64,000 nt of DNA from IMGVR_UViG_3300042891_000711:62001-126000, one strand, 5' to 3'; shown: positions 32,436 through 55,526, counted from the stretch's first letter. Numbers and translations are program-made. The notes: a model not told the origin generated them from the letters alone.

Positions 32436-33128
32436 ATGAGAATATATGATTTAAATCCCGTAGTTAACGAAGATAATGAAATGTCAGATGTCATTACTGC
32501 TCGCGGACTAGTAAATAGAGCATTAGATAATCCCGCTGCACGTCAGGAATACTTTGATTACATGACGCATCTGCGTAATAAACACGGTAAAGAATACAGC
32601 ACACGTATACATCAAAAAGCCACATCATTTGCTAAATCAGTAGACGAAACAATTAAAAAAGTAGGCAGCCAATACGAACTTGTTAGTAAATCGGGTAAGA
32701 ACCTAGGCAAGTATCCTACTAGAGCTGGTGCTGAGAAACGTGAGCAACAGGTTAATTATTTTAAACACGTTAAAGAAGATGCGTGGACTGGTGAAAATCC
32801 ACCGTGGCATAACGGTAATGATCAATGGAATGATGGTACTGACCAATGGCATAGTGCAGATGATGGTGCAGGTAGCAGTGCTGCAACTCCATCATCTGCA
32901 GGTCCGCTAACTGGTGAGATACCAGTTAAAGAAGAGTTTAATGCACAAGATGTTGTTAGTGTTGATGTTCCACTATTAATACGCTTACTTGAATATGCTC
33001 GCGAAGATGCTAAAACAGACATGGATTTACACACAGTAGCTGAACGATTAATTGATCTCAGTCAAGAAGGCGTTACACTAACAATGCAAGATTACGACAC
33101 AATTTGCAACACCAAGGAAACTGATTAA
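32436..33128 (+). CDS. modular putative internal head protein
   Basis: MRIYDLNPVVNE leader; modules after VDE, VKE, VKE. Confidence 0.65.
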   Translation: MRIYDLNPVVNEDNEMSDVITARGLVNRALDNPAARQEYFDYMTHLRNKHGKEYSTRIHQKATSFAKSVDETIKKVGSQYELVSKSGKNLGKYPTRAGAEKREQQVNYFKHVKEDAWTGENPPWHNGNDQWNDGTDQWHSADDGAGSSAATPSSAGPLTGEIPVKEEFNAQDVVSVDVPLLIRLLEYAREDAKTDMDLHTVAERLIDLSQEGVTLTMQDYDTICNTKETD

Positions 33129-38974: not shown

Positions 38975-39688
38975 ATGAAAAAACTAGTATTATTAGTAGG
39001 TCTATTATTAAGCGTAAATGCTTATGCAGGCATCAATCAAGAGTGCCCTACACTAACAGCCGCAGGTGCAGCTACATACGCTGCCAAACCAGGCGATCAA
39101 GAAATTTGTCATAAGAACTACGCTGTTATCCATAGCTGTGCAGTTAAAGCACCTATTGCAGTATTTGAACGGTTGTCATTAGAAGACATGACAGGTCCTG
39201 CAAAACGTAAAGACGACTTCCGACCAGATCCAAAAGTTACTCCGGCATGTTCAGCTACCCTAGCTGACTATGCTACTGTAGGTCGTACACATGACCGTGG
39301 ACATATGAGCCCGGCTGGTAACAACACACAAGATCCAGCAATCATGAGTGAAAGTTTCTTCCTAAGCAATATGGAGCCACAAATTGCTAATAACAATCGT
39401 GGTATATGGAAACAGTTAGAAACATACGAACGTGAATGGGCTAAACAACCAGGTACAGATTATTACATTATTAGTGGTGGTATCTTTGATGCAGGCCATC
39501 AAAAAACAGGCAACGGCTTAGGTATTCCTACACGTTTATACAAGATTATTATTGAAAAGAATAGTAAGAAAGTTAAGGCTTACTTGATGCCAAACACAGC
39601 ATTACCTGTAGCAGACTTACCCAAATATGAAACTACAATAGCTAATGTAGAATCAGCAACTGGTCTTAAGTTTGCCCTACCTAAATAA
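38975..39688 (+). CDS. DNA/RNA non-specific endonuclease (NucA/EndA family) with signal peptide
   Basis: DRGHMSPA, SFFLSNMEPQ, NRGIWKQLE; MKKLVLL...NAYA signal. Confidence 0.92.
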   Translation: MKKLVLLVGLLLSVNAYAGINQECPTLTAAGAATYAAKPGDQEICHKNYAVIHSCAVKAPIAVFERLSLEDMTGPAKRKDDFRPDPKVTPACSATLADYATVGRTHDRGHMSPAGNNTQDPAIMSESFFLSNMEPQIANNNRGIWKQLETYEREWAKQPGTDYYIISGGIFDAGHQKTGNGLGIPTRLYKIIIEKNSKKVKAYLMPNTALPVADLPKYETTIANVESATGLKFALPK

Positions 39689-39690
39689 TA

Positions 39691-40455
39691 TTATTTTGCA
39701 GCTAATTTAAAAAATACTCTAACAAAATAATATTGAGGATTTATATACCTAACCCACGTGGGGCCTTTAAATATATGGCTCCACGTGGTATATTTTTCTC
39801 TGAAATCTTGATGATGTTCGTAATGCCACGCTTGATTTAAATTAAGTGGAAACAACCACGGATATGTTTTTTCTCCGTAGTGCAGAAGATAATAATCGTG
39901 TTGTACTTCTAATATAACTTTAAACAATATAGGTAATACGATTATATAGAAGTAATAATCAATACCAAATAATAATATAAAAATAATAGATAGTATCAGC
40001 TCTAGTTCTCGTAGATATTTAATTATAAATGGAAATTCTGTATATTGTTGTAATAAGATATTCATATTATCTATAGATGGCTTGCTAAATGGATTTAATC
40101 CAATCCAAAAATAGAAAATACCTTTATGCAATGTTGTTGTAAATATATCTTTGTCTGTTTTCCAATACAAATGATGATACCAGTGTGTTTTGATAGATGA
40201 CGATTTATCTGCATAAGTGTCCGGACTGACAATATAGATAAAACAATCAATTATATACCTAAAAAAAGTATTTTTTGGAAGTATATATCGATGTTCCACA
40301 TAATCATGGCCTATGATTTCCGCAAACATCCATACTATGTACGTAACAAGTAATGAGATTGTTAATAAATGCCAATTATTAAAATATAATAACCCGCTAA
40401 CGGCTATTATAATATAAGCATGCTGTTTAATAAATTCTATTAGAGTTTGTTTCAT
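39691..40455 (-). CDS. divergent desaturase-like membrane protein 3
   Basis: HDYVEH, HWYHH, HYEHH plus TM helices. Confidence 0.72.
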   Translation of the reverse strand: MKQTLIEFIKQHAYIIIAVSGLLYFNNWHLLTISLLVTYIVWMFAEIIGHDYVEHRYILPKNTFFRYIIDCFIYIVSPDTYADKSSSIKTHWYHHLYWKTDKDIFTTTLHKGIFYFWIGLNPFSKPSIDNMNILLQQYTEFPFIIKYLRELELILSIIFILLFGIDYYFYIIVLPILFKVILEVQHDYYLLHYGEKTYPWLFPLNLNQAWHYEHHQDFREKYTTWSHIFKGPTWVRYINPQYYFVRVFFKLAAK

Positions 40456-41233
40456 TTTTGGTAAATGCTATTAAAAATATCCAATACTGTAAGTTGATAT
40501 ATTTCCACCATTTACTGCCAAAATATAATTTATTTGGATTTTTATGATGACTAACGTGATATGCTGTATTAAACCAAATTGGTAACATCCATGGTAAATC
40601 TTTACAAGGTCGTTTACTTGTATGAAAAAAGATATCAGGGCCTGCACAATATACTATTACTATATATGTAAGAGGTAATACATAAAAAGATATGTAATTA
40701 GCAACGCCGAATAACAATATGTATACCACACTACATATTGTTAGTATCGTAAATCGATAGTTAACCAACCAATCAGGATAGTACCAAGTTGGCTGATACC
40801 TCGACACATCAATATCTAACATCATTGATGGTGTTGTTTTTTTATCAATCATGGTAAATGTATTACAAAAAAACATAAAGGTATTTTCATTGACTGCCGC
40901 TGTAACTGGATCTTGATTGATAAACCAAAATTTATGATGTATTATATGGCCGACAATATAACCTTTTTGATTTTTGGCCGATACAAATGGGGAATATATA
41001 TACGCTATCACTAAAAATAAATATCGTGTCAGTGAATGTTTAAATGTAATTATATTGTGTTGAGCATACTCATGAACAAATAATGTCAACATTGCGCATA
41101 TAACATATGAAAATATAAATCCCGATACCAGATTAACATAACCTAAATATGTCATTATGCTTAAAAATATAAGCAATAAAAGATAATAATAATCAACAAT
41201 TTTTATTTTAATAAAATTTAATAAGTTTAACAT
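40427..41233 (-). CDS. divergent desaturase-like membrane protein 4
   Basis: HEYAQH, HIIHH, HVSHH; start reassigned to ATG 41233 (MLNLLNF). Confidence 0.72.
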   Translation of the reverse strand: MLNLLNFIKIKIVDYYYLLLLIFLSIMTYLGYVNLVSGFIFSYVICAMLTLFVHEYAQHNIITFKHSLTRYLFLVIAYIYSPFVSAKNQKGYIVGHIIHHKFWFINQDPVTAAVNENTFMFFCNTFTMIDKKTTPSMMLDIDVSRYQPTWYYPDWLVNYRFTILTICSVVYILLFGVANYISFYVLPLTYIVIVYCAGPDIFFHTSKRPCKDLPWMLPIWFNTAYHVSHHKNPNKLYFGSKWWKYINLQYWIFLIAFTKNETNSNRIY

Positions 41234-41238
41234 AGTAA

Positions 41239-41250
41239 TATTTATAAATA
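41239..41250. promoter_or_regulatory. bidirectional late-promoter palindrome
   Basis: TATTTATAAATA gives TATAAATA on both strands between divergent genes. Confidence 0.75.
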
Positions 41251-41279: not shown

Positions 41280-42017
41280 ATGAAAATAACTGAAGGTGGG
41301 AATGTATTTAAACTAGCTGATGGTAGCGAAGCAACCGGACGTATCAATCGTGCAGATGTCATTCCTACAGTTAAATGGTTAGAGCAATTAACAGGACTTA
41401 ATCTAGTAGACAATATGCTAGGGTCAACTGGCTACAAAGAAACAAGTGGCGACCTAGACCTAGCAGTTGATGTAAGTAAAATCAGCAAAGATGTACTGGT
41501 ACAACAACTATTAAAGAAAGGCATTGAACCTACTGACATTAAAAAGACAGGCGACAGCGTACATTTTAAAACACCCATCAACGGTGAAGCAAAGAACGGC
41601 TACGTACAAACTGACTTTATGTTTGGTGATCCAAACTTCCAACGTTTTAGTATGACAGGTAGTCCAGAAGGTAGCCCATTCAAAGGCATGCATCGTCATG
41701 TATTACTTGCTAGTATTGCTAAAGCACAGGGCATGAAATGGTCATACAAGAATGGCCTAATGGACCGTACTACAAACGAAGTTATTTCAAAAGATCCAAG
41801 TGAAATTGCACACAAACTATTCAATGGTAGTGCCGCTGATCTAGCATCAGTTGAAACTATCGTTGCTAAGATTAAAAATCTACCTAACTACAATGCCTTA
41901 GTAGCAGATGCACGTGAAACATTAGGCAAGGAAAATGTACAACTACCGGAATCACAGCAGGCAATAGTAGGCGAAGGTTCGGCAGCATGGTTTAAGAACT
42001 GGAAGTCAGTGCTGTGA
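41280..42017 (+). CDS. Pol-beta superfamily nucleotidyltransferase with leader
   Basis: MKITE leader; LGSTG...SGDLDLAVD...VQTDFM. Confidence 0.8.
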   Translation: MKITEGGNVFKLADGSEATGRINRADVIPTVKWLEQLTGLNLVDNMLGSTGYKETSGDLDLAVDVSKISKDVLVQQLLKKGIEPTDIKKTGDSVHFKTPINGEAKNGYVQTDFMFGDPNFQRFSMTGSPEGSPFKGMHRHVLLASIAKAQGMKWSYKNGLMDRTTNEVISKDPSEIAHKLFNGSAADLASVETIVAKIKNLPNYNALVADARETLGKENVQLPESQQAIVGEGSAAWFKNWKSVL

Positions 42018-42955
42018 GAGCTAAGGAGTTTATCTTAGAAGGCGGTTGGGCAAGTACTTTAACACAAGGTACACATATCACACCTGCACTAGTTGATGTT
42101 GTTGTACAATCATTACCTGCATTTGAACAAGCATTAAATGCTTTCTTAAAAACCAAAGACCTAGCACCAGTTAAGATAGGCACGCCAGTTGGTAGTACAA
42201 CATACTACAAACGCGACCTTGCACAAAATCCTCAACGTGAATACGGTGACATTGATGTTAACTTCTTTGTGCCACGCTTGTCTGATATGTCGGACAATGC
42301 TAACGAACAAACATACAGTTCAGCTATTAAAGAGTTTTGCGACAGTAACCCTAACTACTCAACTAACAACGGCACAAATGTTATAATTAAAGTAGGCGAC
42401 GAATATGTACAAGTTGACTTTGTTACAGCATACTATGAGAACGAACAGTGGAGTCGTGCCTTAGGACCAGAGTACAATGTTAAAGGTGTACTAAGCGCAA
42501 GTTTATACTCATCACTAGCAGAAGCATTAAATCTCAGCTTTGGTGGACGTGGAGTACAGGTTAAATTACAAAATGGTGTGCCAGTTAGTTTTAGACAAAC
42601 TAAAGATACAGAGCTTAAAACCATAACAAATAATCCCGACACATGGGCAGTTGATATTGCTACATTCCTTGGTGCTAAAACTATCAGCGCACGTTTAGCC
42701 AAGTATCCAGGTATGGGTGACGAAATAAAAACTTCAAATACTATTAACAGTATTGTTGGCATTGCTGAAAGTTTAGGCCGTCCTGAGTTAATAGAACAAG
42801 TGAAAGCAATTTACATAAGTAAAATAAGCAAGGCAGTTAATAGCAGTAAGTTTGATAAAGCTGTGACATCAGAAGCTAAGAAAAAAGCTGAAGATACCAA
42901 AGCATTATTAACAAGAGAAGCACAGCGTATATTAGGACAGTTTGATGCGATTTAA
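42014..42955 (+). CDS. Pol-beta superfamily nucleotidyltransferase with leader
   Basis: MRAKEFILE leader; VGSTTY...YGDIDV...VQVDFV. Confidence 0.78.
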   Translation: MRAKEFILEGGWASTLTQGTHITPALVDVVVQSLPAFEQALNAFLKTKDLAPVKIGTPVGSTTYYKRDLAQNPQREYGDIDVNFFVPRLSDMSDNANEQTYSSAIKEFCDSNPNYSTNNGTNVIIKVGDEYVQVDFVTAYYENEQWSRALGPEYNVKGVLSASLYSSLAEALNLSFGGRGVQVKLQNGVPVSFRQTKDTELKTITNNPDTWAVDIATFLGAKTISARLAKYPGMGDEIKTSNTINSIVGIAESLGRPELIEQVKAIYISKISKAVNSSKFDKAVTSEAKKKAEDTKALLTREAQRILGQFDAI

Positions 42956-44297
42956 AGAATTTTTAAGAGAATACAGCAGAGAGAAAACAGTCAATGTCTT
43001 TGGCAACAAACTTGTTGCGGCATTAGGCAAGGATAAGAGCCACACTCTTTCTGGTACACAGTTAGGCACGGATCGTGCGTTCATTGATCAAAAGATCAAA
43101 GTTAATGATATGATTACAGCAGAACAACGTCAAATAATTATCGATCACATCATGGTTGTAATTGAAAATTCTGACCCTACAGCAAACAAAGAGTATGTAC
43201 AGTGGTTGACTAAAGTATATGCTAACCAAGGTATTAAACTAGAAGATATAATAAGTCGTGGTAACAGTGCGCTTAAAATGTATCACGAATTCAAAGTTAA
43301 AAAAATATTACCAGCAGAATATAGAGACATTGGTCGCATTGACTTTGCTGGCTTAGAAGCAATAGCACAAAATCTTGACCTACGTAATGCCTTAGCCGCT
43401 AAAGAAGAACAAGAAGCCGCTAAGACTGTAGACAAGGGCGAAGCTGAAACTGTATTTGAAAATGCTGCAGTGCGTATCATTGTACCCAAGAATGAAGCAG
43501 CATCCGGTTACTATGGACAAGGTACACGTTGGTGTACTGCTGGACGTGACAACAATATGTACGATCGTTATGCTCGTGATGGTGACTTGTATATCTTACT
43601 ACCTAAGAAACCCGACTACGAAGGTGAGAAATATCAACTACACTTTAGTAGCAATCAGTTTATGGACGAAGGTGATAACTACGTAGACAGCGTAAAAGAC
43701 CTAATAACTAAACGCTTTGGCAATTTATTACCATTCTTTATGGAGCGCGAGCCTTCACTTAAAGATTGGTTAGTGTTTACTCCAGATGAGGTATTAAAAC
43801 CATTATTGGCTAAAATTAAAACAGCCGTAAACGACCACGTAAGCGAAATAGTCAACGACTGGGAAGTACAAGACGACTACTGGTGGGATCACCTACGCAG
43901 TGAAGGATATGTATATCCAGAAGGTCACGACGAAGAAGGCGAGATTGACTTTGATGCTGCGGCAGATGCCGATCTAAGTTACACTGATTGGAACTACGAA
44001 GCCAGCGACTTTATTCGAACAATTAATAATGCTGTAGATCTAACGCCAGAAGAAGTGCGCGAAATTGCCCAAGAGGAAGAAGATGATTACAACGGAGATG
44101 TGGGTGTTAATGACCTTGATACTATCATAGAACGCAGTATATCAAAAAATATTGGTAGAAATAGTAGTGACGGTGGTGTGATAGAATGGATTAAAGATCA
44201 CATTTATATTAAGAAAACTGGTGGTGATGGAGCATGGGACGTTAGTTTGCTGTACACAGACAAAGAAGGAAAGCGTGCAGAATACGCAATACACTAA
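42945..44297 (+). CDS. PcfJ-like domain protein with leader
   Basis: MRFKEFLRE leader; YGQGTRWCTA...KYQLHF. Confidence 0.65.
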   Translation: MRFKEFLREYSREKTVNVFGNKLVAALGKDKSHTLSGTQLGTDRAFIDQKIKVNDMITAEQRQIIIDHIMVVIENSDPTANKEYVQWLTKVYANQGIKLEDIISRGNSALKMYHEFKVKKILPAEYRDIGRIDFAGLEAIAQNLDLRNALAAKEEQEAAKTVDKGEAETVFENAAVRIIVPKNEAASGYYGQGTRWCTAGRDNNMYDRYARDGDLYILLPKKPDYEGEKYQLHFSSNQFMDEGDNYVDSVKDLITKRFGNLLPFFMEREPSLKDWLVFTPDEVLKPLLAKIKTAVNDHVSEIVNDWEVQDDYWWDHLRSEGYVYPEGHDEEGEIDFDAAADADLSYTDWNYEASDFIRTINNAVDLTPEEVREIAQEEEDDYNGDVGVNDLDTIIERSISKNIGRNSSDGGVIEWIKDHIYIKKTGGDGAWDVSLLYTDKEGKRAEYAIH

Positions 44298-44298
44298 T

Positions 44299-45000
44299 AT
44301 GAGAGCTAGAGACTTTACAAAGAACAACGTTGCTTATAACAAACAACTAAATCCAGTGGCCTGGGACAATAATCAATTAAACGATGAAGTGCGAGATCGA
44401 CTACTAGAGATTGCTGAACGTTTTGTCAGCTACTTAGAGATTCCTAATTTTAAAGTAGAAGATGTTGTACTCACAGGTAGTATGGCCAACTACAACTGGA
44501 CTAAGTTTAGTGATTTTGATGTGCATGTTGTTACTAACTACAGTGACCTACAATGTGATGATATTGCCGAAGCGTTCTATCGTGCCAAGAAACAAATTTG
44601 GAATGACGGGCACGATATTACTATCTACGGTTATGATGTAGAATTGTATGTAGAAGATGTTGCGCAACCTCCAGTTAGCGAAGGTGTATATAGTTTGTTA
44701 AACAATAAGTGGCTTAAAACTCCCGACTTTAAAGTGCCATCAATCGATCGTGCTAGTGTTAATGCCAAAGTATTAGATCTACGTAGCCAAATTGATCATG
44801 CTATTGTAGCCGCTGATGATCCAGAAGATATTAAACGTATATCAGAAAAGATTCGTAAAATGCGCCGTGCAGGATTAGATGCTGGCGGCGAATTCAGCAC
44901 AGAAAATCTAGCATTTAAAATCCTACGTAATATGAAGTACATGGATAAATTAAGTAAAGCATATCGTCAACAACAAGACGATGATTTGAGTTTAAAATAA
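44299..45000 (+). CDS. Pol-beta superfamily nucleotidyltransferase with leader
   Basis: MRARDF leader; LTGSMANYNWTKFSDFDVH...DVELYVED; start reassigned to 44299. Confidence 0.82.
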   Translation: MRARDFTKNNVAYNKQLNPVAWDNNQLNDEVRDRLLEIAERFVSYLEIPNFKVEDVVLTGSMANYNWTKFSDFDVHVVTNYSDLQCDDIAEAFYRAKKQIWNDGHDITIYGYDVELYVEDVAQPPVSEGVYSLLNNKWLKTPDFKVPSIDRASVNAKVLDLRSQIDHAIVAADDPEDIKRISEKIRKMRRAGLDAGGEFSTENLAFKILRNMKYMDKLSKAYRQQQDDDLSLK

Positions 45001-46004
45001 TGAGAGCACGTGAATTTATAACTGAAGCTATTAGCAACAAGCGAGTAATTCAGTATATTAAACAACATCACCCTAGAGGCGAATGGACTGCGGTTGCTAA
45101 TAACATGGTTATGAAATACCCAAAATACGAATTATCGTGGGTTCCTGTTAGCCAACTTAAAATAGATGGTGACGAGCCAATTGAAGATCCGTATAGTCGT
45201 GTTATTGACGTAGATCAAAGTTATGCAAGCAGACTTTCTACACAAGATATTGAAGATAATCCTATTGTCATAGACGCACAAGGACATATCTTAGATGGTA
45301 ATCATCGTGCTTGGCAAGCAAAACAATTAGGCATGGATATGATACCAGCGTATGTGCCTGTTAAAGAATTAACTGAATCACTAGATCTTGAAGTTGAAGA
45401 ATTTTTAAATAATCTAACACCGGAAGATGTTGGTGTAGACGAAGTAGGCGATTACCGTGTACACTTTGAAGGCTTTACTGATGACTGCCAATCCAGCAGA
45501 GATTACTGTCGTAATCCAAAAAAAGTGTTTCAAGAAGTATTTGCTGATTTTATCCGCCGTGAGGGTGGACAACAACCTGTAGCGTCAGGTATGGTAGGTG
45601 ATGATGACTACCCTATTCTATACAGCGTGTTTAAGGACACAGTTAGAAAAAATGTGCCGTTAACTCCAGAAAAAGCATACCAAATAGCATATAATAAAAA
45701 GAAACCGTGGCCTACAGGCAGTGCTGAAGAGCAACTAATTCGTAGTGATTTCCAATTAAGTGATTTGTATGATAGGTATGTGTTGAATCAGACCGATATG
45801 AGAGCAAATGAATTTATAAGCGAAGACGAAGGATTAAGCTATCAAGGTAATTGTACCGATGATGATGTTATTGAATATATTTTCGGTGATGCCACTACGT
45901 TTGCGCAGTTGGTTGACGAATACGGCGATGAGTTTGTATTAGACGATTTAGTAGTAAAGTATAATCCAGAAGAAGATATACACTACTTCTATTATAAGAG
46001 CTAA
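45000..46004 (+). CDS. ParB/Srx-like domain fusion protein with leader
   Basis: MRAREFITE leader; PIVIDAQGHILDGNHR; second in-frame leader MRANEFISE at 45798. Confidence 0.75.
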   Translation: MRAREFITEAISNKRVIQYIKQHHPRGEWTAVANNMVMKYPKYELSWVPVSQLKIDGDEPIEDPYSRVIDVDQSYASRLSTQDIEDNPIVIDAQGHILDGNHRAWQAKQLGMDMIPAYVPVKELTESLDLEVEEFLNNLTPEDVGVDEVGDYRVHFEGFTDDCQSSRDYCRNPKKVFQEVFADFIRREGGQQPVASGMVGDDDYPILYSVFKDTVRKNVPLTPEKAYQIAYNKKKPWPTGSAEEQLIRSDFQLSDLYDRYVLNQTDMRANEFISEDEGLSYQGNCTDDDVIEYIFGDATTFAQLVDEYGDEFVLDDLVVKYNPEEDIHYFYYKS

Positions 46005-46005
46005 T

Positions 46006-46314
46006 ATGAGAGCCAATGAATTCTTAACCGAGTCGTACGAGTTTTTTGATACTATAGTAGATCAAATCAAAGCTCAAGTGCCAGCAGAAGAAATATGGTT
46101 TCACGGTAGCAGGGTAATTGGAACTGAACACGATGAAAGTGACTGGGATATCTTAGTTATTGTTCCTGATAACATAGTAGGTGATGAGTATATCAATGTT
46201 ACTAGGATATTACAATCTATAGCAAGAAGATACGAAAATTTTGATATACAACCTGCTCGTGCGTCAAACAATATTGCCCGTATAGCAAGAGAAGAAGGCG
46301 AACGAATAGATTAA
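46006..46314 (+). CDS. minimal nucleotidyltransferase (MNT-like) with leader
   Basis: MRANEFLTE leader; IWFHGSRVIG...SDWDILV. Confidence 0.85.
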   Translation: MRANEFLTESYEFFDTIVDQIKAQVPAEEIWFHGSRVIGTEHDESDWDILVIVPDNIVGDEYINVTRILQSIARRYENFDIQPARASNNIARIAREEGERID

Positions 46315-46316
46315 AG

Positions 46317-46395
46317 AACACCTACCTTAGGCCCATACTCGTTATGGTGTTTGGTGTGGCCGGCTGCTGGCCTGGAGGGATGCCAAAAGTGAGCA
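46317..46395 (+). ncRNA. candidate structured RNA (family not identified)
   Basis: GC-rich intergenic island with stems ACACC/GGTGT, CCATA/TATGG, GGCCGG/CTGGCC. Confidence 0.5.
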
Positions 46396-46422
46396 AGATT
46401 AAACAAGCGATAAATACTTAAT

Positions 46423-49400
46423 ATGCGATATAGTCAAATTAAACAAGCCTTAAAAGAAGCAGAGATCATTGATGAAGTATCAATGAGTCCTTCCAGCCTA
46501 GAAGCGTTCGCTAACAGTCCGGAAGCTGATGGTATGCTTATGGGTATTGAATTTGAAATGTGCGTACCCAATGCCAGCTCAGGTGACTATGAGCCTGAGT
46601 GGGAATACGATTACGAATACAACGAAAGCGCCTACAATATTGATGATATTCTTAACTTCTTCCGCAACGGTGATTTCAGTAACATGAGTCGTAGTGACTC
46701 TGAGCGTTATCGTAGTGAACTATATGACGAATACCTAGACTGGACTAATGAAGCATCTAATCGCTATATAGACGATAACGTAGATGAATTAGACAGCCTT
46801 ATCCGAGATCAACTTGAAGGCGAAATTGATCGTGATGATGTCAAAGATGCGGCACGTACTCGCTGGATAGAAGCAAACCCTGACGAAGATCCCGACAGTG
46901 ACGATGCTGATGCAGAAATTCGTGTCATAACATTAGAAATGATCGAAGATCGAGTAGATGAATTAATGGCAGATACCAGCGGTAGAGAGTATCAATATGC
47001 CTACGACCAAGCACGTCAAGAAATGGAAGATGACTTCCGTAACGGTGGTGATGGCGATGAAGGTGCTTGGTTAAGCGACATTGGCATTGGTGATATGCAG
47101 GACGCTGAACGTCATTGGGGCTTTGATTGGCCTCACATGTATGACGCTAACGAAGGCAATGATGGTGGTGATGCAGACATAGATCAAGTAGCAGATGACT
47201 TTTATGGTGCTACTGGATATGAAGCACGCGGGTTTAGTAATTACCACAGTGGCAATCGTAGTCAGCAACAACAAGAAGGTTACTTTATTATTGAACCCGA
47301 TGCTTCAATTGATGCTGAACAAGGTGATGCAGGCTTAGAGTTTATCAGTCCAGCTATGCCACTTAAAGATGGCTTGACTATGTTGAAAAAAGTTAAACAA
47401 TGGGCTAAGTTGGCAGGTTGTTATACTAACAAATCAACGGGCCTACACATGAACATCAGTGTGCCTAACATGACCACTGATAATCTAGACTATGTTAAAC
47501 TAGCATTATTCCTAGGTGACGAATACGTACTTCAAGAGTTTGGTCGTCAGTACAATACCTATGCTAAAAGTGCCATGAAGATTGTTAAAGAAAAGATTCA
47601 GGCCAATCCAGAAAACGCCACAGAATTGTTGGCCAAGATGAAAGAACATCTTGGAGCGGCAGCTAGTAAACTAGTACACAGTGGCGTTACACAAAAGTAT
47701 ACAAGTATCAATACCAAAGGCAACTACGTAGAATTCCGTGGTCCAGGTGGTGATTATCTAAACGAAGACATACCTAAACTTGTTAATACTGCTCTACGCC
47801 TAGCACAAAGCCTACGTATTGCCACAGACGAGTCAGCATACAAACAAGAATACGCTAAGAAATTATACAAACTAATCAGCCCAGAAGGCGAGTGGACTGA
47901 TCCTAATAACTCAGTAGCATTGTTCAGTCGCTATGCTCTAGGACAGATCAACAAATCAGAATTAGTAAGTAATGTTCGTCAAGCACAAACAGCTCGTAAA
48001 GAGAAGAAAGGCGAAGAAGTACAGTACTGGGTAATGAATAAAGATGGCACTGGTGGTAAGCAAATGGTATTTGCCGCTAGTGAAACAGCCGCTATCATCC
48101 TAGGCGGTAAACAAATGGGCATGAACCGTGAACAAAGTATCAGCAAACTTAAAGCTGAATTGTTTGTAGATACTAACAAAGAAAATACACCGCCAGCATC
48201 AGTACCACTTAGTTGGATTGATTGGATAACAGATACACTACCTACGGTTACTGTAGATACAGCAAATTCTGTAAGAGAAAGAATAAAAGATGGCAGAGAT
48301 AATTTAGATGCAGATGCCAATGGTTGGATAGTTAGACAGATTGACAACGAACTACGCAGTAGAATGGATCAAGGAGTAGTCGACGGCAATGAAACACGCT
48401 GGAAGGTTTATTTTGCTCGTGGTAGACATGTAGATCAAGACCCGGTATTCGTCGATGCTGATAGTCCTCGTCAGGCTAAACTTAAAGCCGCAGATATATT
48501 CATGCGAGAGCAACGGATATCAGTGGGCCTACACGATTTAGAAGCCATTGCTACCACACAAGATGCTGGCCGTCCAGAAGTAACTTGGAATATTATAAAC
48601 GGTCTAGGTGAACCTGCTGGTACTGTTAACGCAAGAACCAGTGACGAAGCACTACATGTATACGGTAGTGTTAATAATGTCGATACTAGATACTATAGAG
48701 CAACACCAGTTGAAACAACGCCAAGTGCAGGCACGTACACTAGTTTCGCAGATGCGCAGGCTGCGGCAGATAGAGCAAACGCTGGTAATACCACTAACAG
48801 AGAAGTGTTTGACGGTTTAGCCAATAACTGGCAAGAGTGGCTTCAGGGTGTTGGTAGACATACCGACGGTAATCTACAGCGTATACTTGATAATATGGCC
48901 CAGGGTGTTAATGCTCACTATACCAACTTAACTCTTGACGAGAAAGACTTTATTATTAATACTGTTAATCAAGAAATACGCCGCCGTAGTAGTAATAACG
49001 AATTAGCTGCCAACGCAGGTGGTGCCGAAAACGCAGTGCGTGATAGTTTGCCCCAAGCACATCGTGAGTGGTTAGACAATGTAGCCGATAAGAGTGACAT
49101 GGATCTAATCAACGTATTCCGTAATGTCAGCACAACCGCAGTATTAAATGATCAACAGACTGCTTACTTTAGAGTTATTATTAAACGTGAACTACGTCGT
49201 CGTGGTATCAGCGACAGTGAGCGCGATGCTAGCGAACAAGGCGCAACTCCAGTACCTAATTATGAGATATATGCGCCAGACAGCGGAGTAGTAGTACACC
49301 AATTCCACGCCGACAACGAAACAGACGCAAATAGAAAGTTCAGTGAATTTGAACAGAATTACGAATCAGATTACGATTTCCATCACGAGTATCGCAGAAT

Positions 49401-49650
49401 TGGCCCTGCACAACAGGAATTACCATTGGAACCCGCAGTGCCACAGACCACTGCTACAGATTTTGAAGTAGTTAAAGCTGATGGTAGTGTGGTGTCAAAC
49501 ATACGAGGTGCTGATATGGTCTATGCTCATCGTAAAGCACGTGAATTAGAACAAGACCTGGGCTTAGAAAGTGGTGCGTTAACAGTTAGAGCATTACCAA
49601 CAACAAACGAATCTATAAAACAATTACGCCGATTGGCAGGATTAGTATAA
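46423..49650 (+). CDS. putative amidoligase (COOH-NH2 ligase) multidomain protein
   Basis: GIEFEM, IEPDASI, GLEFISP, TNKSTGLHMNIS, KYTSIN, VEFRGPGG; leader ending LKE; C-terminal LRRLAGLV. Confidence 0.82.
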   Translation: MRYSQIKQALKEAEIIDEVSMSPSSLEAFANSPEADGMLMGIEFEMCVPNASSGDYEPEWEYDYEYNESAYNIDDILNFFRNGDFSNMSRSDSERYRSELYDEYLDWTNEASNRYIDDNVDELDSLIRDQLEGEIDRDDVKDAARTRWIEANPDEDPDSDDADAEIRVITLEMIEDRVDELMADTSGREYQYAYDQARQEMEDDFRNGGDGDEGAWLSDIGIGDMQDAERHWGFDWPHMYDANEGNDGGDADIDQVADDFYGATGYEARGFSNYHSGNRSQQQQEGYFIIEPDASIDAEQGDAGLEFISPAMPLKDGLTMLKKVKQWAKLAGCYTNKSTGLHMNISVPNMTTDNLDYVKLALFLGDEYVLQEFGRQYNTYAKSAMKIVKEKIQANPENATELLAKMKEHLGAAASKLVHSGVTQKYTSINTKGNYVEFRGPGGDYLNEDIPKLVNTALRLAQSLRIATDESAYKQEYAKKLYKLISPEGEWTDPNNSVALFSRYALGQINKSELVSNVRQAQTARKEKKGEEVQYWVMNKDGTGGKQMVFAASETAAIILGGKQMGMNREQSISKLKAELFVDTNKENTPPASVPLSWIDWITDTLPTVTVDTANSVRERIKDGRDNLDADANGWIVRQIDNELRSRMDQGVVDGNETRWKVYFARGRHVDQDPVFVDADSPRQAKLKAADIFMREQRISVGLHDLEAIATTQDAGRPEVTWNIINGLGEPAGTVNARTSDEALHVYGSVNNVDTRYYRATPVETTPSAGTYTSFADAQAAADRANAGNTTNREVFDGLANNWQEWLQGVGRHTDGNLQRILDNMAQGVNAHYTNLTLDEKDFIINTVNQEIRRRSSNNELAANAGGAENAVRDSLPQAHREWLDNVADKSDMDLINVFRNVSTTAVLNDQQTAYFRVIIKRELRRRGISDSERDASEQGATPVPNYEIYAPDSGVVVHQFHADNETDANRKFSEFEQNYESDYDFHHEYRRIGPAQQELPLEPAVPQTTATDFEVVKADGSVVSNIRGADMVYAHRKARELEQDLGLESGALTVRALPTTNESIKQLRRLAGLV

Positions 49651-50315
49651 TGAACTTATTTGAAATGTTTGAACAAGGGCCACCTAAGCCAACGCTGATA
49701 GATGCATTGCGTGATTTTTTGCCCATCGCAGTTCAACATTTAAAATTAGATCACATTCCTAAAATTCGTTTAGTTAAATCATTAGATGATACAACATTTG
49801 GTCGTTATGTCAATGATGAGCAAGTAATTTATGTAGTTGTTGATAATCGCAATCCTGTAGATATCTTGCGTACACTAGCACACGAAATGGTACATTATGC
49901 GCAGGGTCAAGATGATCAACTTGATAGCACTTCCGGCGAAACAGGCAGTCCAATTGAGAACGAAGCCAACGCAGAAGCAGGTGTTATTATGCGGTTGTTT
50001 AATCAAAAACATCCTAGCTATATGCAGGCCGATCCAATAGCATTACCTGAAGCATGGAGTGCAAAATACAAAAAGAGTATTAATTGCAGTAACCCAAAAG
50101 GATTCAGTCAAAAGGCGCACTGTGCCGGACGTAAGAAAACTGATGAGAACTTTGCAGATGGTAAGAAGCCAGGCCGTAAAGGACTAGCCAAACGTTCAGG
50201 TGTTGACTGTGGTCAAAGCATAAGTAAATTAAGAAGCGTTGCAAAAAATAGCAGTGGCGAAAAGCAACGTATGGCACACTGGTGCGCTAATATGAAATCA
50301 GGGAGAAGTAAATGA
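49650..50315 (+). CDS. zincin-like (HEXXH) protein plus basic Cys-pair modules
   Basis: MNLFEMFE leader; LRTLAHEMVH...ENEAN. Confidence 0.72.
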   Translation: MNLFEMFEQGPPKPTLIDALRDFLPIAVQHLKLDHIPKIRLVKSLDDTTFGRYVNDEQVIYVVVDNRNPVDILRTLAHEMVHYAQGQDDQLDSTSGETGSPIENEANAEAGVIMRLFNQKHPSYMQADPIALPEAWSAKYKKSINCSNPKGFSQKAHCAGRKKTDENFADGKKPGRKGLAKRSGVDCGQSISKLRSVAKNSSGEKQRMAHWCANMKSGRSK

Positions 50316-50989
50316 AGTCAAATGAATTTTTATCAGAATCTGAAAAGCAAAAAGGTGTTGACGGTAAAGCCTGCTGGGATGGTTATAAGCGCATGGGCAC
50401 TAAGAAGAAAGGTGGCAAGACTGTTGACAACTGTGTTAAGATGGAAGAATCCATTGATGAGTACGATGACGAAGCCGGCATGGTTGACAGTAATTTAGAA
50501 ACAATTAAACGTGCTGCTGAAGAATTAGATCAAGTGTTAGGCCAAGATGACAACATGGCTGAATGGGCACAGGAAAAACTAGCAGTAGTTAAGAGCATGT
50601 TAGTTGCTGTTAAAGACTATGTAGTTAGTCAAAAATCTACAGGCATCGATCCACAAATAGACGAAGAACTAGAAGAAACATACCACGGTGATGAGTTCTT
50701 CGAAGCCTACGGCGAAATGTGGTTTAACGAAGATGAACAATTAGACGAAGCTGAATATCACGGACGTAAAGTTCCCCTAGGTAAACCAATGCAGGGTGAT
50801 GTTAAGAAGTTTAAAGTATATGTTAAAGATCCTAGCACAGGTAACATCAAAAAAGTAAACTTTGGTGATCCTAATATGCGTATTAAGAAGTCAAACCCTG
50901 CGAGACGTAAATCATTTAGAGCACGTCACAACTGTGCAAACCCGGGTCCACGCACTAAAGCACGTTACTGGTCATGCCGCAAGTGGTAA
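50312..50989 (+). CDS. modular basic internal head-like protein
   Basis: MKSNEFLSE leader; ACWDGYK...DNCVK; RKSFRARHNC...YWSCRKW. Confidence 0.72.
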   Translation: MKSNEFLSESEKQKGVDGKACWDGYKRMGTKKKGGKTVDNCVKMEESIDEYDDEAGMVDSNLETIKRAAEELDQVLGQDDNMAEWAQEKLAVVKSMLVAVKDYVVSQKSTGIDPQIDEELEETYHGDEFFEAYGEMWFNEDEQLDEAEYHGRKVPLGKPMQGDVKKFKVYVKDPSTGNIKKVNFGDPNMRIKKSNPARRKSFRARHNCANPGPRTKARYWSCRKW

Positions 50990-50990
50990 T

Positions 50991-51410
50991 ATGACCAACT
51001 GGGAAACTTACGTTAAAGAATCCTATGAGCTTATTAAAGAAGCTGAAACTGCACTATCAATCACATTAGAACACAATGTTGAAGCATACGTTGTACACTT
51101 GTTCGCACACTTCCTAGACAAACCCAATGTCAATACAGAACCTGTGGGCATTAAACTAATGGCCAGTACCAATCTACCCGTAGCACAACGTAAGATATTA
51201 CTCAAAGATGTAGGCGATGAATGCTTGTTAATCAATGCTATGGAATGGAACCGACGTCGTTGGCCTACTGATACCTACTATGCTGAAATGGGGCAATCTG
51301 CTTATGTTACACGTGCTGTTGTGGCTAGGCCTGTAGAAGATATCTACGACGATTTGGCTATGGAATTTACTACAGTTACACAGGTTCTACGTAGATGTAG
51401 AATTAGTTAA
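50991..51410 (+). CDS. hypothetical protein
   Basis: ATG 50991 (MTNWETY); EAYVVHL...LKDVGDECLL...MGQSAY. Confidence 0.7.
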   Translation: MTNWETYVKESYELIKEAETALSITLEHNVEAYVVHLFAHFLDKPNVNTEPVGIKLMASTNLPVAQRKILLKDVGDECLLINAMEWNRRRWPTDTYYAEMGQSAYVTRAVVARPVEDIYDDLAMEFTTVTQVLRRCRIS

Positions 51411-52139
51411 TTTCATTAATTTCATTGCTATTAACACCCTGCAATACAACCAACTAGTATCAATTTCCCACCAATACCGATTGAAGTACGGAGTAGTTGT
51501 ATCATTATGATGATGCGCATGCAATACTTCACCGCCGCCGAATATACCCGGAAAAAATATTTTTGATTTATCCTTGCCACTATTGCCTGCATAGGTAAAC
51601 CCAATTTTATGATAGCCATAGTTTGATAATATTACAGCACAGGGATTAAAGACATAAAGAAAAAATGCGCCTATTACTGCACCAGGCACGCCAAATAATA
51701 TAGTCAGCACAGCCCACAATATAATTGTTCCCAATCTTGGATATTTACTATATAGATTAAGTTCAATCCAATCAATGGCAGTTATGATATCTGGTGCATA
51801 TAATTTCATTTCCTCGTCGCTGATATAATAAGGACGGCCTAGTTCATTGTGTTTATAGTCAAGCATCTGCGTAAATGTTAATTGATAAGGACTATGTGGG
51901 TCTAGCTCAGTATCACTATACTTGTGATGTTTTCTGTGTTGGGCGGCATAGTGTTGCATCCAATTGGGCCAAGAATACTGCATGGTAATCCATACCCAAA
52001 ATCTAAAAAAATGTTCTAGTCCAGGTGCAAAGCTAAAATAATGATGGCCTTTACCTCGATGTATGTAGATGGAAAATACCACAAATGTTACATGCATTAT
52101 TATTAAAAATGTAATTATAGCTGCGGTTAACCCAAACAT
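51387..52139 (-). CDS. membrane fatty acid desaturase-like protein 5 (delta-9-like)
   Basis: HRGKGH, HRKHH, DPHSP, GEVLHAHHH, WWEID. Confidence 0.9.
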   Translation of the reverse strand: MFGLTAAIITFLIIMHVTFVVFSIYIHRGKGHHYFSFAPGLEHFFRFWVWITMQYSWPNWMQHYAAQHRKHHKYSDTELDPHSPYQLTFTQMLDYKHNELGRPYYISDEEMKLYAPDIITAIDWIELNLYSKYPRLGTIILWAVLTILFGVPGAVIGAFFLYVFNPCAVILSNYGYHKIGFTYAGNSGKDKSKIFFPGIFGGGEVLHAHHHNDTTTPYFNRYWWEIDTSWLYCRVLIAMKLMKLTNSTST

Positions 52140-52201: not shown

Positions 52202-52230
52202 TTGACATGGAGATGTAAATAGTATATAAT
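52202..52230 (+). promoter_or_regulatory. sigma70 promoter with nested TAAATA
   Basis: TTGACA-17 bp-TATAAT; TAAATA at 52216. Confidence 0.88.
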
Positions 52231-52862: not shown

Positions 52863-55526
52863 ATGAGTTATGTTGACGCACTGTTTGACAGGGCAAAAGA
52901 TCGTATCTACGTTGTAGAAAGAAAAGAAGGCATGCGCGAGTATGTCGAATACCCAGCAAATTATGTCATGTACATTGATGACCCTAAGGGTAAGTATCGC
53001 ACAGTATATGACACTCCAGTAAGTCGTTTCAGCACACGTGTTGGCAAGGAATTCCACAAAGAAACACGTATTCAATCGGGCAAGCGTATATGGGAAAGTG
53101 ATATCAATCCTGTGTTCCGTTGTTTATCAGATAACTATCTTGGTATTGATTCACCTAAACTACAAACTGCGTTTTGGGATATTGAAACAGACTTTGACCC
53201 AGCACGTGGGTATGCTCCTACCAGCGATCCGTTTAATCCTATTACAGCTATATCAGTTTACTTAGATTGGCTAGACAAGTTAGTTACCTTAGTTATTCCG
53301 CCCAAGAGCTATAGTTGGGAAACTGCACAGGAAATATGTGACCAGTATGAAAACTGTTTTATGTTTGAACGTGAAGCAGACATGTTGGATACATTCCTTA
53401 ATCTAATTGATGATGCAGATGTCTTAAGTGGCTGGAACAGTGAGGGCTATGATATTCCATATACTATTGGGCGTGTTACACGTGTGTTAAGCAAAGATGA
53501 CACTAGACGCTTTTGTCTATGGGGTCAGTATCCAAAACAGCGTGAATTTGAACGTTTTGGTGCCGCAAACATCACTTTTGACCTCATTGGCAGGGTTCAT
53601 TTAGACTACATGCAGTTGTACCGCAAATACACCTATGAAGAGCGACATAGTTATAGTTTAGATGCTATTGGTGAATATGAATTAGATGAGCGTAAGGTTG
53701 CCTATGAAGGTACATTGGATCAACTGTACAACAAAGACTTTCCTAAGTTCATTGACTATAACCGTCAGGATACTATGTTGCTAGGAAAACTAGATAAGAA
53801 GTTACGCTTCTTAGACTTAGCCAATGAACTTGCGCATGATAACACAGTGTTGCTACAGACTACAATGGGTGCTGTAGCAGTTACAGAGCAGGCTATCATC
53901 AATGAAGCACATCAACAAGGGTTAATTGTTCCTAATCGTAAGAATAGAGATGACATGGGCGATACACAAGCGGCAGGTGCTTATGTAGCCACTCCAAAAG
54001 CAGGCATGCATGATTGGATTGGTTCGGTTGATATTAACTCCCTGTATCCTAGTGCAATTCGTGCGCTTAACATGGGACCAGAAACTATTATTGGACAGAT
54101 ACGTCCAATTATGACAGACCATTATATCAATGAAAAGATGGCCAATAAGTCAAGTTTTGCAGATGCTTGGGAGGGCTTGTTCGCTACCCTAGAGTATACT
54201 GCGGTTATGGAAAGTAAACCCGGTGTTGAACTTACAATCGATTGGGAGGCTTCGGGAGAAAGTACTGTACACAGTGCGGCAGAAGTATGGACACTAATCT
54301 TCGATAGCAATCAACCATGGATACTCAGTGCTAATGGTACCATCTTTAGCTTTGAGAAAGAAGCAGTTGTTCCGGGTTTGCTAAAACGTTGGTATGCCGA
54401 ACGTAAAGAACTACAGGCTAAGATGCGTTCATGTACAGATCCAGAAGAGATTGCGTTCTGGGATAAGCGTCAGTTAGTTAAGAAGATTAACTTGAATAGC
54501 TTGTATGGTGCCTTATTGAATCCGGGCTGTCGTTTCTTTGATAAGCGTATTGGACAATCAACTACACTAACTGGTCGTACTATTGCTCGACACATGGATG
54601 CGTTTATTAATGAATGCTTCACTGGTGTATATGATCACACTGGTGATGCTATTATCTATGGTGATACAGACTCATGTTATTTTAGTGCTTGGCCTATGAT
54701 CAAAGATGAAGTTGAAGCTGGTAACATGGAGTGGAATGCCAGTATTGCTATTAAGCTGTATGACGATATTTCGGACCAGGTCAATGAAAGTTTTCCCGCA
54801 ATGATGGAACGTAGCTTTCACGTGCCACGCAGTATGGGCAGTGTGATCAAAGGCGGGCGTGAACTGGTTGCAAGTAAAGGCTTATTCATTAAGAAGAAAC
54901 GCTATGCTGTGCTGATTACAGACTTAGATGGCAAACGCATGGATACCCACGGCAAGCCTGGCAAGGTTAAGGCTATGGGCCTAGACTTGAAACGCAGTGA
55001 TACTCCAAAAGTAGTGCAGGATTTCTTAAGTGAGATTTTACTAGCGGCACTTACTGGTGTAGACAAAACTGCTATTATTGACATGGTGCGCGAGTTTAAG
55101 ATTGCGTTCCAAGATAGACCTGCTTGGGAGAAAGGTACACCCAAACGTGTAAACAATCTAACCAAGTTTACCAAAGCAGAAGAACGTGAAGGTCGTGCCA
55201 ATATGCCCGGACATGTACGTGCGGCTATGAACTGGAATAACCTAAAACGCATGCACGGTGATAACTATTCAATTAACATTGTCGATGGTATGAAAACTAT
55301 TGTGTGTAAGTTAAAAGATAATCCAATTGGATTTACCAGTGTGGGCTATCCAACAGATGGCACTCATATTCCGCAATGGTTCAAAGACTTACCTTTCGAC
55401 AATGACCTAATGGAGTCGACAATTGTTGATCAAAAAGTAGAAAACTTACTCGGTGTGCTTAAATGGAACATTACAGAAAGCACAGACATTAAAACTACAT
55501 TTGATGCATTGTTTAGTTTTGATTAA
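52863..55526 (+). CDS. family B DNA polymerase
   Basis: Exo DIET, GWNSEGYD; pol DINSLYPS, KINLNSLYG, YGDTDS, KKRY. Confidence 0.97.
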   Translation: MSYVDALFDRAKDRIYVVERKEGMREYVEYPANYVMYIDDPKGKYRTVYDTPVSRFSTRVGKEFHKETRIQSGKRIWESDINPVFRCLSDNYLGIDSPKLQTAFWDIETDFDPARGYAPTSDPFNPITAISVYLDWLDKLVTLVIPPKSYSWETAQEICDQYENCFMFEREADMLDTFLNLIDDADVLSGWNSEGYDIPYTIGRVTRVLSKDDTRRFCLWGQYPKQREFERFGAANITFDLIGRVHLDYMQLYRKYTYEERHSYSLDAIGEYELDERKVAYEGTLDQLYNKDFPKFIDYNRQDTMLLGKLDKKLRFLDLANELAHDNTVLLQTTMGAVAVTEQAIINEAHQQGLIVPNRKNRDDMGDTQAAGAYVATPKAGMHDWIGSVDINSLYPSAIRALNMGPETIIGQIRPIMTDHYINEKMANKSSFADAWEGLFATLEYTAVMESKPGVELTIDWEASGESTVHSAAEVWTLIFDSNQPWILSANGTIFSFEKEAVVPGLLKRWYAERKELQAKMRSCTDPEEIAFWDKRQLVKKINLNSLYGALLNPGCRFFDKRIGQSTTLTGRTIARHMDAFINECFTGVYDHTGDAIIYGDTDSCYFSAWPMIKDEVEAGNMEWNASIAIKLYDDISDQVNESFPAMMERSFHVPRSMGSVIKGGRELVASKGLFIKKKRYAVLITDLDGKRMDTHGKPGKVKAMGLDLKRSDTPKVVQDFLSEILLAALTGVDKTAIIDMVREFKIAFQDRPAWEKGTPKRVNNLTKFTKAEEREGRANMPGHVRAAMNWNNLKRMHGDNYSINIVDGMKTIVCKLKDNPIGFTSVGYPTDGTHIPQWFKDLPFDNDLMESTIVDQKVENLLGVLKWNITESTDIKTTFDALFSFD

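Follow-up and report, generated by a model that had tools for sequence, protein, structure and literature searches.

We analyzed a window of 64,000 nucleotides (nt), namely, bases 62001 to 126000 of the 218.9-kb IMG/VR virus contig IMGVR_UViG_3300042891_000711, in which nine separate genes on the plus strand (positions 41280 to 50989) form an array. Several of their products begin with the same nine-residue leader, behind which the domains are unrelated in sequence and fold. Unless the contig is named, positions are those of the window, and genes are referred to by their first position. The completeness of the contig was estimated at 62%, and at this size and completeness its source is therefore a jumbo phage. 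It encodes a gp20-type portal (phrog_213, E 3e-103), a gp55-like late sigma factor, gp46/gp47-like nucleases, and a baseplate hub, all of T4 type, and the nearest kin of the portal (~50% identity) are found in Agrobacterium phage Atu_ph07, Pseudomonas phage PA5oct, Sinorhizobium phage Phosso, and Rak2-like coliphages. The array sequence was present in 22 lake-water metagenome runs and two freshwater metatranscriptome runs. It had no megablast match among GenBank phages, and cultured phages gave no tblastn match to the 42014 or the 45000 protein. The array belongs to an uncultured lake-water jumbo phage that is distantly related to T4. A preliminary description of the window had interpreted these genes as a cassette of enzymes that use a portable leader to enter the phage head for delivery at infection. 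The open reading frames (ORFs) and N-termini that it listed were all found where it had placed them, and the bearing of our data on its other claims is given below.

Genes of the array

The genes are tightly packed, with overlaps or spacings of -11 to +1 nt except for one gap of 108 nt, and encode proteins of 12 to 121 kDa, eight of which have an isoelectric point (pI) between 4.4 and 6.9. (i) The first gene (41280 to 42017) encodes a protein of 245 residues in which a five-residue propeptide, MKITE, is followed by GGNVF. Its family has the invariant residues G57, D58, D60, and D112, which make it probably a Pol-beta-type nucleotidyltransferase (NTase). This assignment rests on motifs, since the alignment of the family with that of the following gene by hhalign was weak (E 0.06 and 0.01); searches of both proteins and of the 41280 profile against the PDB by sequence gave noise only. 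(ii) The second gene (42014 to 42955) encodes a Pol-beta-fold NTase of 313 residues, with the leader RAKEFILE after a GTG start codon and GGW thereafter. In its AlphaFold2 model (predicted local distance difference test [pLDDT] 91.8, predicted template modeling score [pTM] 0.88), residues 1 to 12 fall below 50 and the domain exceeds 90, and the leader, a short helix, does not pack against the domain. The top Foldseek matches were all Pol-beta-fold NTases (CdnC, pol mu, PolX, PAP, and others), although weak, with E values from 4e-3 and template modeling scores of ~0.3, and the residues of the GS, DxD, and D motifs (G60, S61, D79, D81, and D135) are invariant in the family. (iii) No fold could be assigned to the 450-residue protein encoded at 42945 to 44297, which begins with MRFKEFLRE followed by YSREKT and for which Pfam and NCBIfam returned nothing. 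It is homologous over residues 67 to 255 (E 7e-17) to PA5oct EST35_0205, which has the N-terminus MKLFEVFTLYE, is annotated as "structural protein, ESI-MS/MS" (electrospray ionization tandem mass spectrometry), and was detected in the virion (PMC7318152). Orthologues of the 42945 protein retain the leader. (iv) The 233-residue protein encoded at 44299 to 45000 is an NTase (Pfam NTP_transf_2; phrog_36119, 2.5e-51) with a half leader, MRARDFTKN, and its orthologues start with MRAKDLVKGN.

(v) The gene at 45000 to 46004 encodes a composite of 334 residues, in which MRAREFITE is followed by a ParB/Srx domain (residues 10 to 123), the tetrapeptide ELTE, a middle domain, an internal copy of the leader (MRANEFISE, in frame at 45798 to 45824), and a C-terminal module of 59 residues (Y.GNCTDDDVIE..., encoded at 45825 to 46001 on the plus strand). 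Its AlphaFold2 model consists of three separate parts (pTM 0.38), the first of which has the ParB/Srx fold, with ParB, Noc, and sulfiredoxin as the top Foldseek matches. The protein contains exactly three [IL]-x-E sites (residues 7 to 9, 124 to 126, and 273 to 275), all within linkers of low pLDDT (residues 1 to 7, 123 to 127, and 255 to 276). (vi) A minimal NTase of 102 residues (46006 to 46314; Pfam Polbeta, 2.8e-7) carries the leader MRANEFLTE, and its best NCBIfam match was the MntA antitoxin family (1.1e-6, under the family cut-off). (vii) A product of 1,075 residues (46423 to 49650) contains an Amidoligase_2 domain (residues 277 to 459; Pfam 1.3e-6) behind a 12-residue leader, MRYSQIKQALKE, that ends in LKE and in orthologues in L-[KDR]-E. 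The homologue in Atu_ph07, the gene of which adjoins the portal gene, has the N-terminus MRWQDISSKKLTE. (viii) The gene at 49650 to 50315 encodes a zincin-like protein of 221 residues (HEMVHY) that starts with MNLFEMFE and ends in a tail of small basic Cys modules. It matched the phrog_87 metalloproteases and, weakly, SprT and Tox-MPTase3; the N-terminus is conserved in the family and the tails are shuffled. (ix) The last gene (50312 to 50989) encodes a mosaic of 225 residues with the leader MKSNEFLSE, in which basic modules are combined with an acidic linker and with a C-terminal DUF5754-like domain that is widespread among aquatic phages. This domain also occurs in pelagiphages, roseophages, and spindle-shaped viruses of Nitrosopumilaceae, and the small basic Cys modules (50050 to 50315 and 50730 to 50989, plus strand) are swapped among the zincin tail, the 50312 protein, and standalone genes of related phages.

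The preliminary description had named four Pol-beta NTases, an amidoligase, a ParB/Srx protein, a zincin, and a PcfJ-like protein in the array. The amidoligase and the ParB/Srx fold are borne out by Pfam and Foldseek, respectively, and so are the NTases at 44299 and 46006 (Pfam) and at 42014 (AlphaFold2 and Foldseek). The NTase at 41280 was recognized by motif only, the zincin by a weak match together with its HEMVH motif, and the PcfJ-like character of the 42945 protein is just a lead, taken from an Atlas hint.

The leader motif on the contig

All six frames of the 219-kb contig were scanned for the pattern [MVL][RK]x[KRNSDQ][DEQ][FILM][ILFM]xE after a start codon. There were six matches (42014, 42945, 45000, 45798, 46006, and 50312), all on the plus strand and all in the array, and the motif was absent from early and metabolic genes. 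Five matches are at ORF starts, and the sixth is the internal copy in the 45000 ORF. These six strict leaders also fit the narrower pattern M[RK]xx[ED]F[IL]xE. When a position-specific scoring matrix built from 120 distinct leaders was applied to 4,461 candidate starts, the strict leaders scored 19 to 26 bits (24.7 at 45798 and 19.1 at 50312), and the runners-up reached 7.5 (the half leader at 44299), 5.5, and 4.4 bits. The motif is thus far above chance.

At the DNA level, the pattern ATG-MRN-N6-SAN-TTY-NTN-NNN-GAR had five matches in the contig and none in T4, in PA5oct, or with a reversed control. As the preliminary description had pointed out, five starts (42014, 44299, 45000, 45798, and 46006) read (A/G)TGAGAGC; they are the sole plus-strand occurrences in the contig. 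Between genes, the leader codons are 70% identical, versus 28% for the 27 nt on each side. Since the variation within the leader is synonymous or conservative, selection acts on the peptide. Recent gene duplication was considered as the origin of the leaders and rejected, because the cargo parts show no relationship to each other in sequence or in fold.

The preliminary description had treated all the listed leaders as related, which holds for the six strict ones. The half leader at 44299 shares the front part, and the N-termini at 41280, 46423, 49650, and 27318 (the last outside the array) are different, shorter or longer peptides, each of which ends in [ILF]-x-E and is conserved within its own family; the N-terminus at 32436 is a weak candidate. 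The inventory of this phage amounts to 6 strict and about 6 variant leaders.

Portability of the leader and exchange of cargo in related phages

The preliminary description had proposed a scan of related phages for the leader. Over the 608 kb of 37 related IMG/VR loci, the leader after a start codon had 71 matches, 70 of which are on the array strand and nearly all at ORF starts, and many other cargo families bear it there. After removal of the first nine residues, 83 leader-bearing proteins, including those of the window, fell into 28 BLASTP groups, ~25 of which are unrelated cargo families. The cargo in the relatives includes an Fe/Mn superoxide dismutase, a GNAT acetyltransferase, DUF6267, DUF6934, and an HxGH nucleotidyltransferase of the 27318 type with a full leader.

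Several protein architectures vary precisely at leader or cleavage site codons. In two loci (L013 and L018), MRAREFITE is followed by SLDPE..., the ParB domain being missing exactly between ITE and LTE. Two others (L010 and L012) have the fused arrangement with an internal leader as at 45798, and in L026 the basic module of the zincin tail is a standalone gene of 64 residues with a strict leader. The 59-residue module of the 45000 protein is ~80% conserved; in metagenome proteins it is joined to GNAT, NUDIX, ParB, and other domains, nearly always directly after [LVI]-[AT]-E. Furthermore, DNA and RNA contigs from lakes cease to match the window at 42963, 45007/45026, 45826 to 45852, and 46398 to 46408, that is, at or within leader codons. 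The cargo is probably exchanged at the leader codons, and such shuffling is compatible with a function of the peptide.

Prohead protease and cleavage site signature

A gp21-like prohead protease, which the preliminary description had proposed to look for, is encoded at the very end of the contig (contig position 218506 to the end). The 132 codons present are the first of the gene; over 119 residues, the encoded fragment shares 36% identity with T4 gp21 (E 2e-17), and the GEVDHP and GVSS regions lie within it. The gene order, namely, portal, a gp67-like protein of 74 residues, a very acidic scaffold-like protein of 260 residues, and the gp21-like protease, is that of T4 (20-67-68-21). The gp67-like protein has a homologue (E 4e-9) in PA5oct, EST35_0150, which occupies the same gene position, was detected in the virion by ESI-MS/MS, and starts with MKINDIITE, a sequence identical to a cargo leader in one of the relatives (L039). 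The contig ends inside the protease gene, and a search for a major capsid gene in it found none; the major capsid protein of a relative (G003) was therefore used instead. This protein and that of PA5oct have HLME and FLVE, respectively, ~23 residues before VGVQPM, which places an L-x-E where the propeptide would end; T4 gp23 has FLTE in that region.

In T4, gp21 cuts after Glu in L/I-X-E (PMC9026906). Such an end is present in the six strict leaders and at 41280 and 46423; at 49650 and 27318 the end is F-E or LFE, and the half leader at 44299 has no such end. In the 41280 family (2466 homologues), an invariant GGN[VI]F follows a peptide of five to seven residues (MKITE, MILAE, MAINLYE, and others), and in 65 distinct N-termini the position -3 is L or I in 65/65 and the position -1 is E in 65/65, with -2 free. 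In the 42014 family (221 homologues, on contigs of up to 400 kb), the mature domain begins with an invariant GGW, before which 109 distinct N-termini have E at -1 in 101 cases and I or L at -3 in 97, again with a free -2. About 15 longer members have an extra N-terminal domain of 60 to 230 residues and mostly keep an E, usually as [LIV]-x-E, before GGW. Fixed residues at -3 and -1 and a free -2 immediately before the mature domain are what one would expect of a gp21-type site.

Resemblance to the T4 capsid targeting sequence

The T4 internal proteins carry an N-terminal capsid targeting sequence (CTS), and in the T4 record (NC_000866) ipII and ipIII start with MKTYQEFIAE and ipI with MKTFKEF. 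The likeness that the preliminary description had seen to these leaders was evident in the DNA: extended by one codon, the leader pattern matched only three genes in the whole T4 genome, ipII, ipIII, and 61.1, and a reversed control gave no match. Neither this contig nor PA5oct had a match to the extended pattern. According to a review of Black's work (PMC9026906), IPIII needs no more than its first 10 residues for packaging; within the CTS, targeting depends on residues 4 and 7, and processing on residues 8 and 10. The leader residues F6, [IL]7, and E9 correspond to F7, I8, and E10 of T4.

Late promoters and predicted late expression

A perfect T4-type late promoter consensus, TATAAATA, is found at 41243 to 41250 on the plus strand, 29 nt before the 41280 gene. 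The contig contains 13 copies of it, most of which are 17 to 37 nt ahead of a start codon, including those of the portal, the baseplate hub, and 41280. A second element, ATAAATA (46410 to 46416, plus strand), has seven of the eight consensus positions and lies in the 108-nt gap before 46423; this gap is not unusually structured and had no Rfam match. Both TAAATA motifs noted in the preliminary description, at 41245 and 46411, are present, and with the perfect promoter and the gp55-like sigma factor gene they would fit the late expression that it had suggested. Scans of the array for sigma-70 promoters and terminators remained at chance level, the one exception being a perfect promoter of the next unit, at 52202.

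In relatives without the two desaturase-like genes that precede the array on the minus strand, the array runs codirectionally from a copy of TATAAATA at the gene of a secreted endonuclease, and in L010 a second copy is located ahead of the zincin gene. The endonuclease gene of the window (38975 to 39688, plus strand; Endonuclease_NS, E 1.5e-35) encodes a signal-peptide-like N-terminus and has a perfect TATAAATA at 38937. Array sequence of the relatives was also found in RNA libraries, as metatranscriptome contigs that report presence only, with no timing or 5' ends.

A proposed head cargo system of the T4 type

The leader motif, its exclusivity to the array, its likeness to the T4 CTS, the protease gene, the cleavage site signature, the late promoter, the diversity of the cargo, and the detection of one homologue in PA5oct virions are best explained by a T4-type system of capsid targeting and propeptide removal for head cargo that has been extended to exchangeable enzymes and polyprotein-like composites. 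We assign this reading a probability of roughly two in three. The data support the interpretation given in the preliminary description, in which packaging, cleavage, and injection are the predicted events, and all the computational checks that it had suggested turned out in its favor. The following steps are proposed. (i) The array would be expressed late, from gp55-type TATAAATA promoters. (ii) The leader, acting like the CTS, would tether the proteins within the prohead's scaffolding core. (iii) The gp21-like protease would cut after the Glu of [LI]-x-E, which would remove the leader and separate the modules of composites such as the 45000 product. (iv) The mature enzymes would be retained alongside the DNA in the head and would pass into the host at infection, where they would probably act on nucleic acids, proteins, or defense systems. 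The proposed enzymes are Pol-beta NTases, the MntA-like minimal NTase, ParB/Srx, the amidoligase, and the zincin in this phage, GNAT and superoxide dismutase in its relatives, and NUDIX in metagenome homologues of the 45000 module. (v) The conserved leader codons would double as junctions for the exchange of cassettes between phages.

Several observations weigh against this reading. (i) The half leader of the 44299 protein lacks the Glu, so that no cut is predicted. Leader-like N-termini are, moreover, present in settings in which packaging is unexpected or not known to take place. Homologues of this protein in the cyanophage DSL-LC02 (L005, 2959 to 3711), where the gene is located among early/replication genes, and in Maribacter phage Molly (L006, 2905 to 3702), which is not T4-like, begin with MNLQEFVDKK and MNLKTLVETD, respectively; such N-termini therefore travel with the family outside the clade. 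(ii) T4 61.1 (NC_000866, 18966 to 19130, minus strand) is a hypothetical protein of 54 residues from the early region that starts with MKTFKEFIKE; it may be an unrecognized internal protein, or the motif may have another role there. (iii) Some members of the 42014 family have N in place of E, and [IL]-x-E was not significantly depleted inside the mature cargo (23 observed versus 28.6 ± 4.8). (iv) The cargo is mostly acidic (pI 4.4 to 5.8) and as large as 121 kDa, unlike the small basic internal proteins of T4; the only basic exceptions are the zincin protein and the small modules. (v) The array adjoins the DNA polymerase block, away from the structural genes, and the genes for the major capsid protein and gp22/gp23 lie beyond the contig end. 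(vi) An expanded leader array is absent from PA5oct and Atu_ph07, the nearest relatives in culture.

A broader version of the head cargo reading is put forward tentatively, at less than even odds. Within a clade of abundant freshwater jumbo phages, the 27-nt leader cassette could serve both as a general, exchangeable address label and as a recombination joint, with the protease processing polyproteins, and could in this way sustain a large, fast-evolving, injected anti-defense arsenal. The members of this arsenal would be the Pol-beta NTases, the MntA-like protein as an antitoxin mimic, GNAT, NUDIX, superoxide dismutase, ParB/Srx, the amidoligase, and the zincin.

The proteins could also be packaged and trimmed as proposed but act within the virion or prohead, as accessories of the core or scaffold, in the protection of DNA (e.g., superoxide dismutase), or in DNA modification during packaging. 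The leader on the prohead core protein at the gp67 position in PA5oct would fit such a role, as would the superoxide dismutase and the small basic modules, which resemble DNA-binding proteins. We nevertheless consider it unlikely, because T4 proteins that carry the CTS, as well as CTS fusions, reach the host (PMC9026906) and because injected polyvalent effectors characteristically have NTase, GNAT, ParB, and zincin domains (PMC5512222).

Less probable still is a tag that has no connection with the capsid, such as a recognition peptide for a chaperone or protease, a localization signal, or an element of translation initiation or regulation. Such a tag would have to account for conservation at the amino acid level, with synonymous or conservative changes across homologues of ~50% identity; for the protease-site pattern of a fixed L/I at -3, a free -2, and a fixed E at -1, just ahead of the mature domain; and for the fact that the T4 CTS is the nearest experimentally defined match. 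A ClpA/B-like gene (23450 to 25759), the leader-like N-termini on early-region genes of T4 and a cyanophage, and the codon usage of the leaders, in which Arg2 is encoded by AGA in 4/5 although AGA makes up 21% of the Arg codons, speak for it. Finally, the breakpoints of natural variants at or within leader codons, the contrast in identity between these codons and their flanks, and the precedent of the mobile regulatory cassettes of T4-type phages (PMC2839356) recall a mere recombination scar, in which the start-site DNA would mediate shuffling and the peptide would have no function, but this is highly improbable given that the peptide pattern is kept through synonymous change, with [LI]-x-E in 65/65 and ~90% of the distinct members of the two NTase families, and that it recurs at internal module junctions.

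Comparison with known systems

The principle behind the head cargo reading is established: the internal proteins of T-even phages have only the CTS in common (PMC3012670, PMC9026906), and two of these proteins counter host defenses, with IPI blocking GmrSD and IPIII being needed to infect a natural Escherichia coli strain (PMC3012670; 10.1101/2022.04.14.488369). What is new here is the scale, together with enzymes as cargo, products that resemble polyproteins, and the lineage of the phage. The features shared with the T4 internal proteins are an N-terminal leader of ~10 residues with the core (K/Q)-E-F-(I/L)-x-E that ends at a gp21 site (L/I-x-E), an encoded protease of the gp21 family, unrelated mature parts with only the leader in common, genes scattered outside the structural module with (here predicted) late expression, and loci that are polymorphic between related phages. 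In contrast to T4, the leader is one residue shorter and recurs in the numbers given above, within a single phage and across the ~25 cargo families of the clade; the cargo consists mostly of acidic enzymes of 12 to 121 kDa instead of small basic proteins, some products are polyprotein-like, with internal cut sites, and the phage itself is a jumbo phage distant from T4.

T4 Alt is a head-packaged ADP-ribosyltransferase that is trimmed by gp21 and ejected to modify host proteins, and its seven-residue N-terminal propeptide (PMC9026906) resembles the short MKITE-type propeptide of the 41280 family. Alt differs in that it belongs to another enzyme class and is encoded by a single gene, not an array. 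The domains found here, i.e., zincin-like peptidase, Pol-beta NTase, ParB/Srx, and GNAT, are also hub domains of the polyvalent proteins known from phages and conjugative elements (Iyer et al. 2017, PMC5512222), which are predicted to be injected by phages with their DNA, and the 45000 product and its metagenome relatives are likewise multimodular. Polyvalent proteins, however, join 2 to 15 effector domains in one large polypeptide and use embedded zincin peptidases, whereas the array consists mostly of separate genes, each with its own leader and away from virion genes; only the 45000 product, with three modules, and some metagenome relatives are composite, and it is the prohead serine protease that is predicted to process the products, at [LI]-x-E. 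The phiKZ-like phages (201phi2-1, phiKZ, and SPN3US) are also jumbo phages with ejection and inner-body proteins, and many of their head-internal proteins are cut after Glu by a gp21-related protease (PMC9026906, PMC5694885), but they belong to another lineage and have an S/A/G-x-E motif, long propeptides, and no portable 9-mer. We found no description of CTS arrays outside the T-even phages in the literature searched, and the PA5oct paper (PMC7318152) does not mention propeptides or targeting.

If the head cargo reading is true, (i) the head-packaged effectors of T4-like phages would not be confined to a few small basic inhibitors but would include a large modular arsenal of enzymes that can be read via a nine-residue label; (ii) there would be a simple rule for spotting injected proteins for anti-defense or takeover in metagenomes, where we saw hundreds to thousands of homologues; (iii) testable candidates would become available, such as an injected MntA-like NTase against HEPN toxins; (iv) a natural set of leaders would exist for protein delivery by engineered phage heads; and (v) the T4 CTS and the polyvalent injected proteins would be linked through protease-processed composites.

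Leader-bearing candidates outside the array and neighboring genes

A second leader-bearing region is located upstream on the plus strand. The gene at 27318 to 28034 encodes a cytidylyltransferase-like protein of 238 residues that starts with MFLSQLFE (phrog_3041, 1.2e-52), in agreement with the HxGH NTase of the preliminary description. Distant orthologues bear the full leaders MKTKQLILE and MKIRQLLKE, and the homologue in HTVC008M starts with MKTLKELLRK. At 28365 to 28532, a Gly-rich protein of 55 residues is encoded with the N-terminus MKITDIIKRPDLTE (4.4 bits). Gly-rich proteins of 63 to 69 residues in the relatives (MKIKELISE or MKIKELIED) resemble it by eye and did not group with it by BLASTP at E 1e-5. 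The weak candidate at 32436 to 33128 encodes a protein of 230 residues with the N-terminus MRIYDLNPVVNE (-6.7 bits), and genes at the equivalent place in the relatives start with MLLTEFF and MLVKDLFE. It is followed by a gene (33128 to 35911, plus strand) for a protein of 927 residues with a PT-HINT/Hint (intein-like) region at residues 96 to 253 and a C-terminal Gly_rich_2 domain.

Three genes for His-box membrane proteins flank the array on the opposite strand (39691 to 40455, 40427 to 41236, and 51387 to 52139, minus strand). Two of these proteins had weak Pfam FA_desaturase matches (E 1e-4 and 8e-6, below the cut-off), and the relatives L012, L020, and L028 lack the first two of the genes at the array locus. 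Within the window, no tRNA genes were found and no Rfam family matched. The next transcription unit is headed by the perfect sigma-70 promoter (TTGACA, 17 nt, TATAAT; 52202 to 52230, plus strand) and includes the DNA polymerase gene (52863 to 55526). The ClpA/B-like gene on the plus strand encodes an ATPase of phrog_4871 (E 1.8e-240), and DnaK-, GroES-, and GroEL-like proteins, judged from their N-termini alone, seem to be encoded at contig positions 4850, 45094, and 45365. Outside the window, the tail/baseplate region contains an ORF of 4,370 codons (contig positions 179296 to 192408, minus strand).

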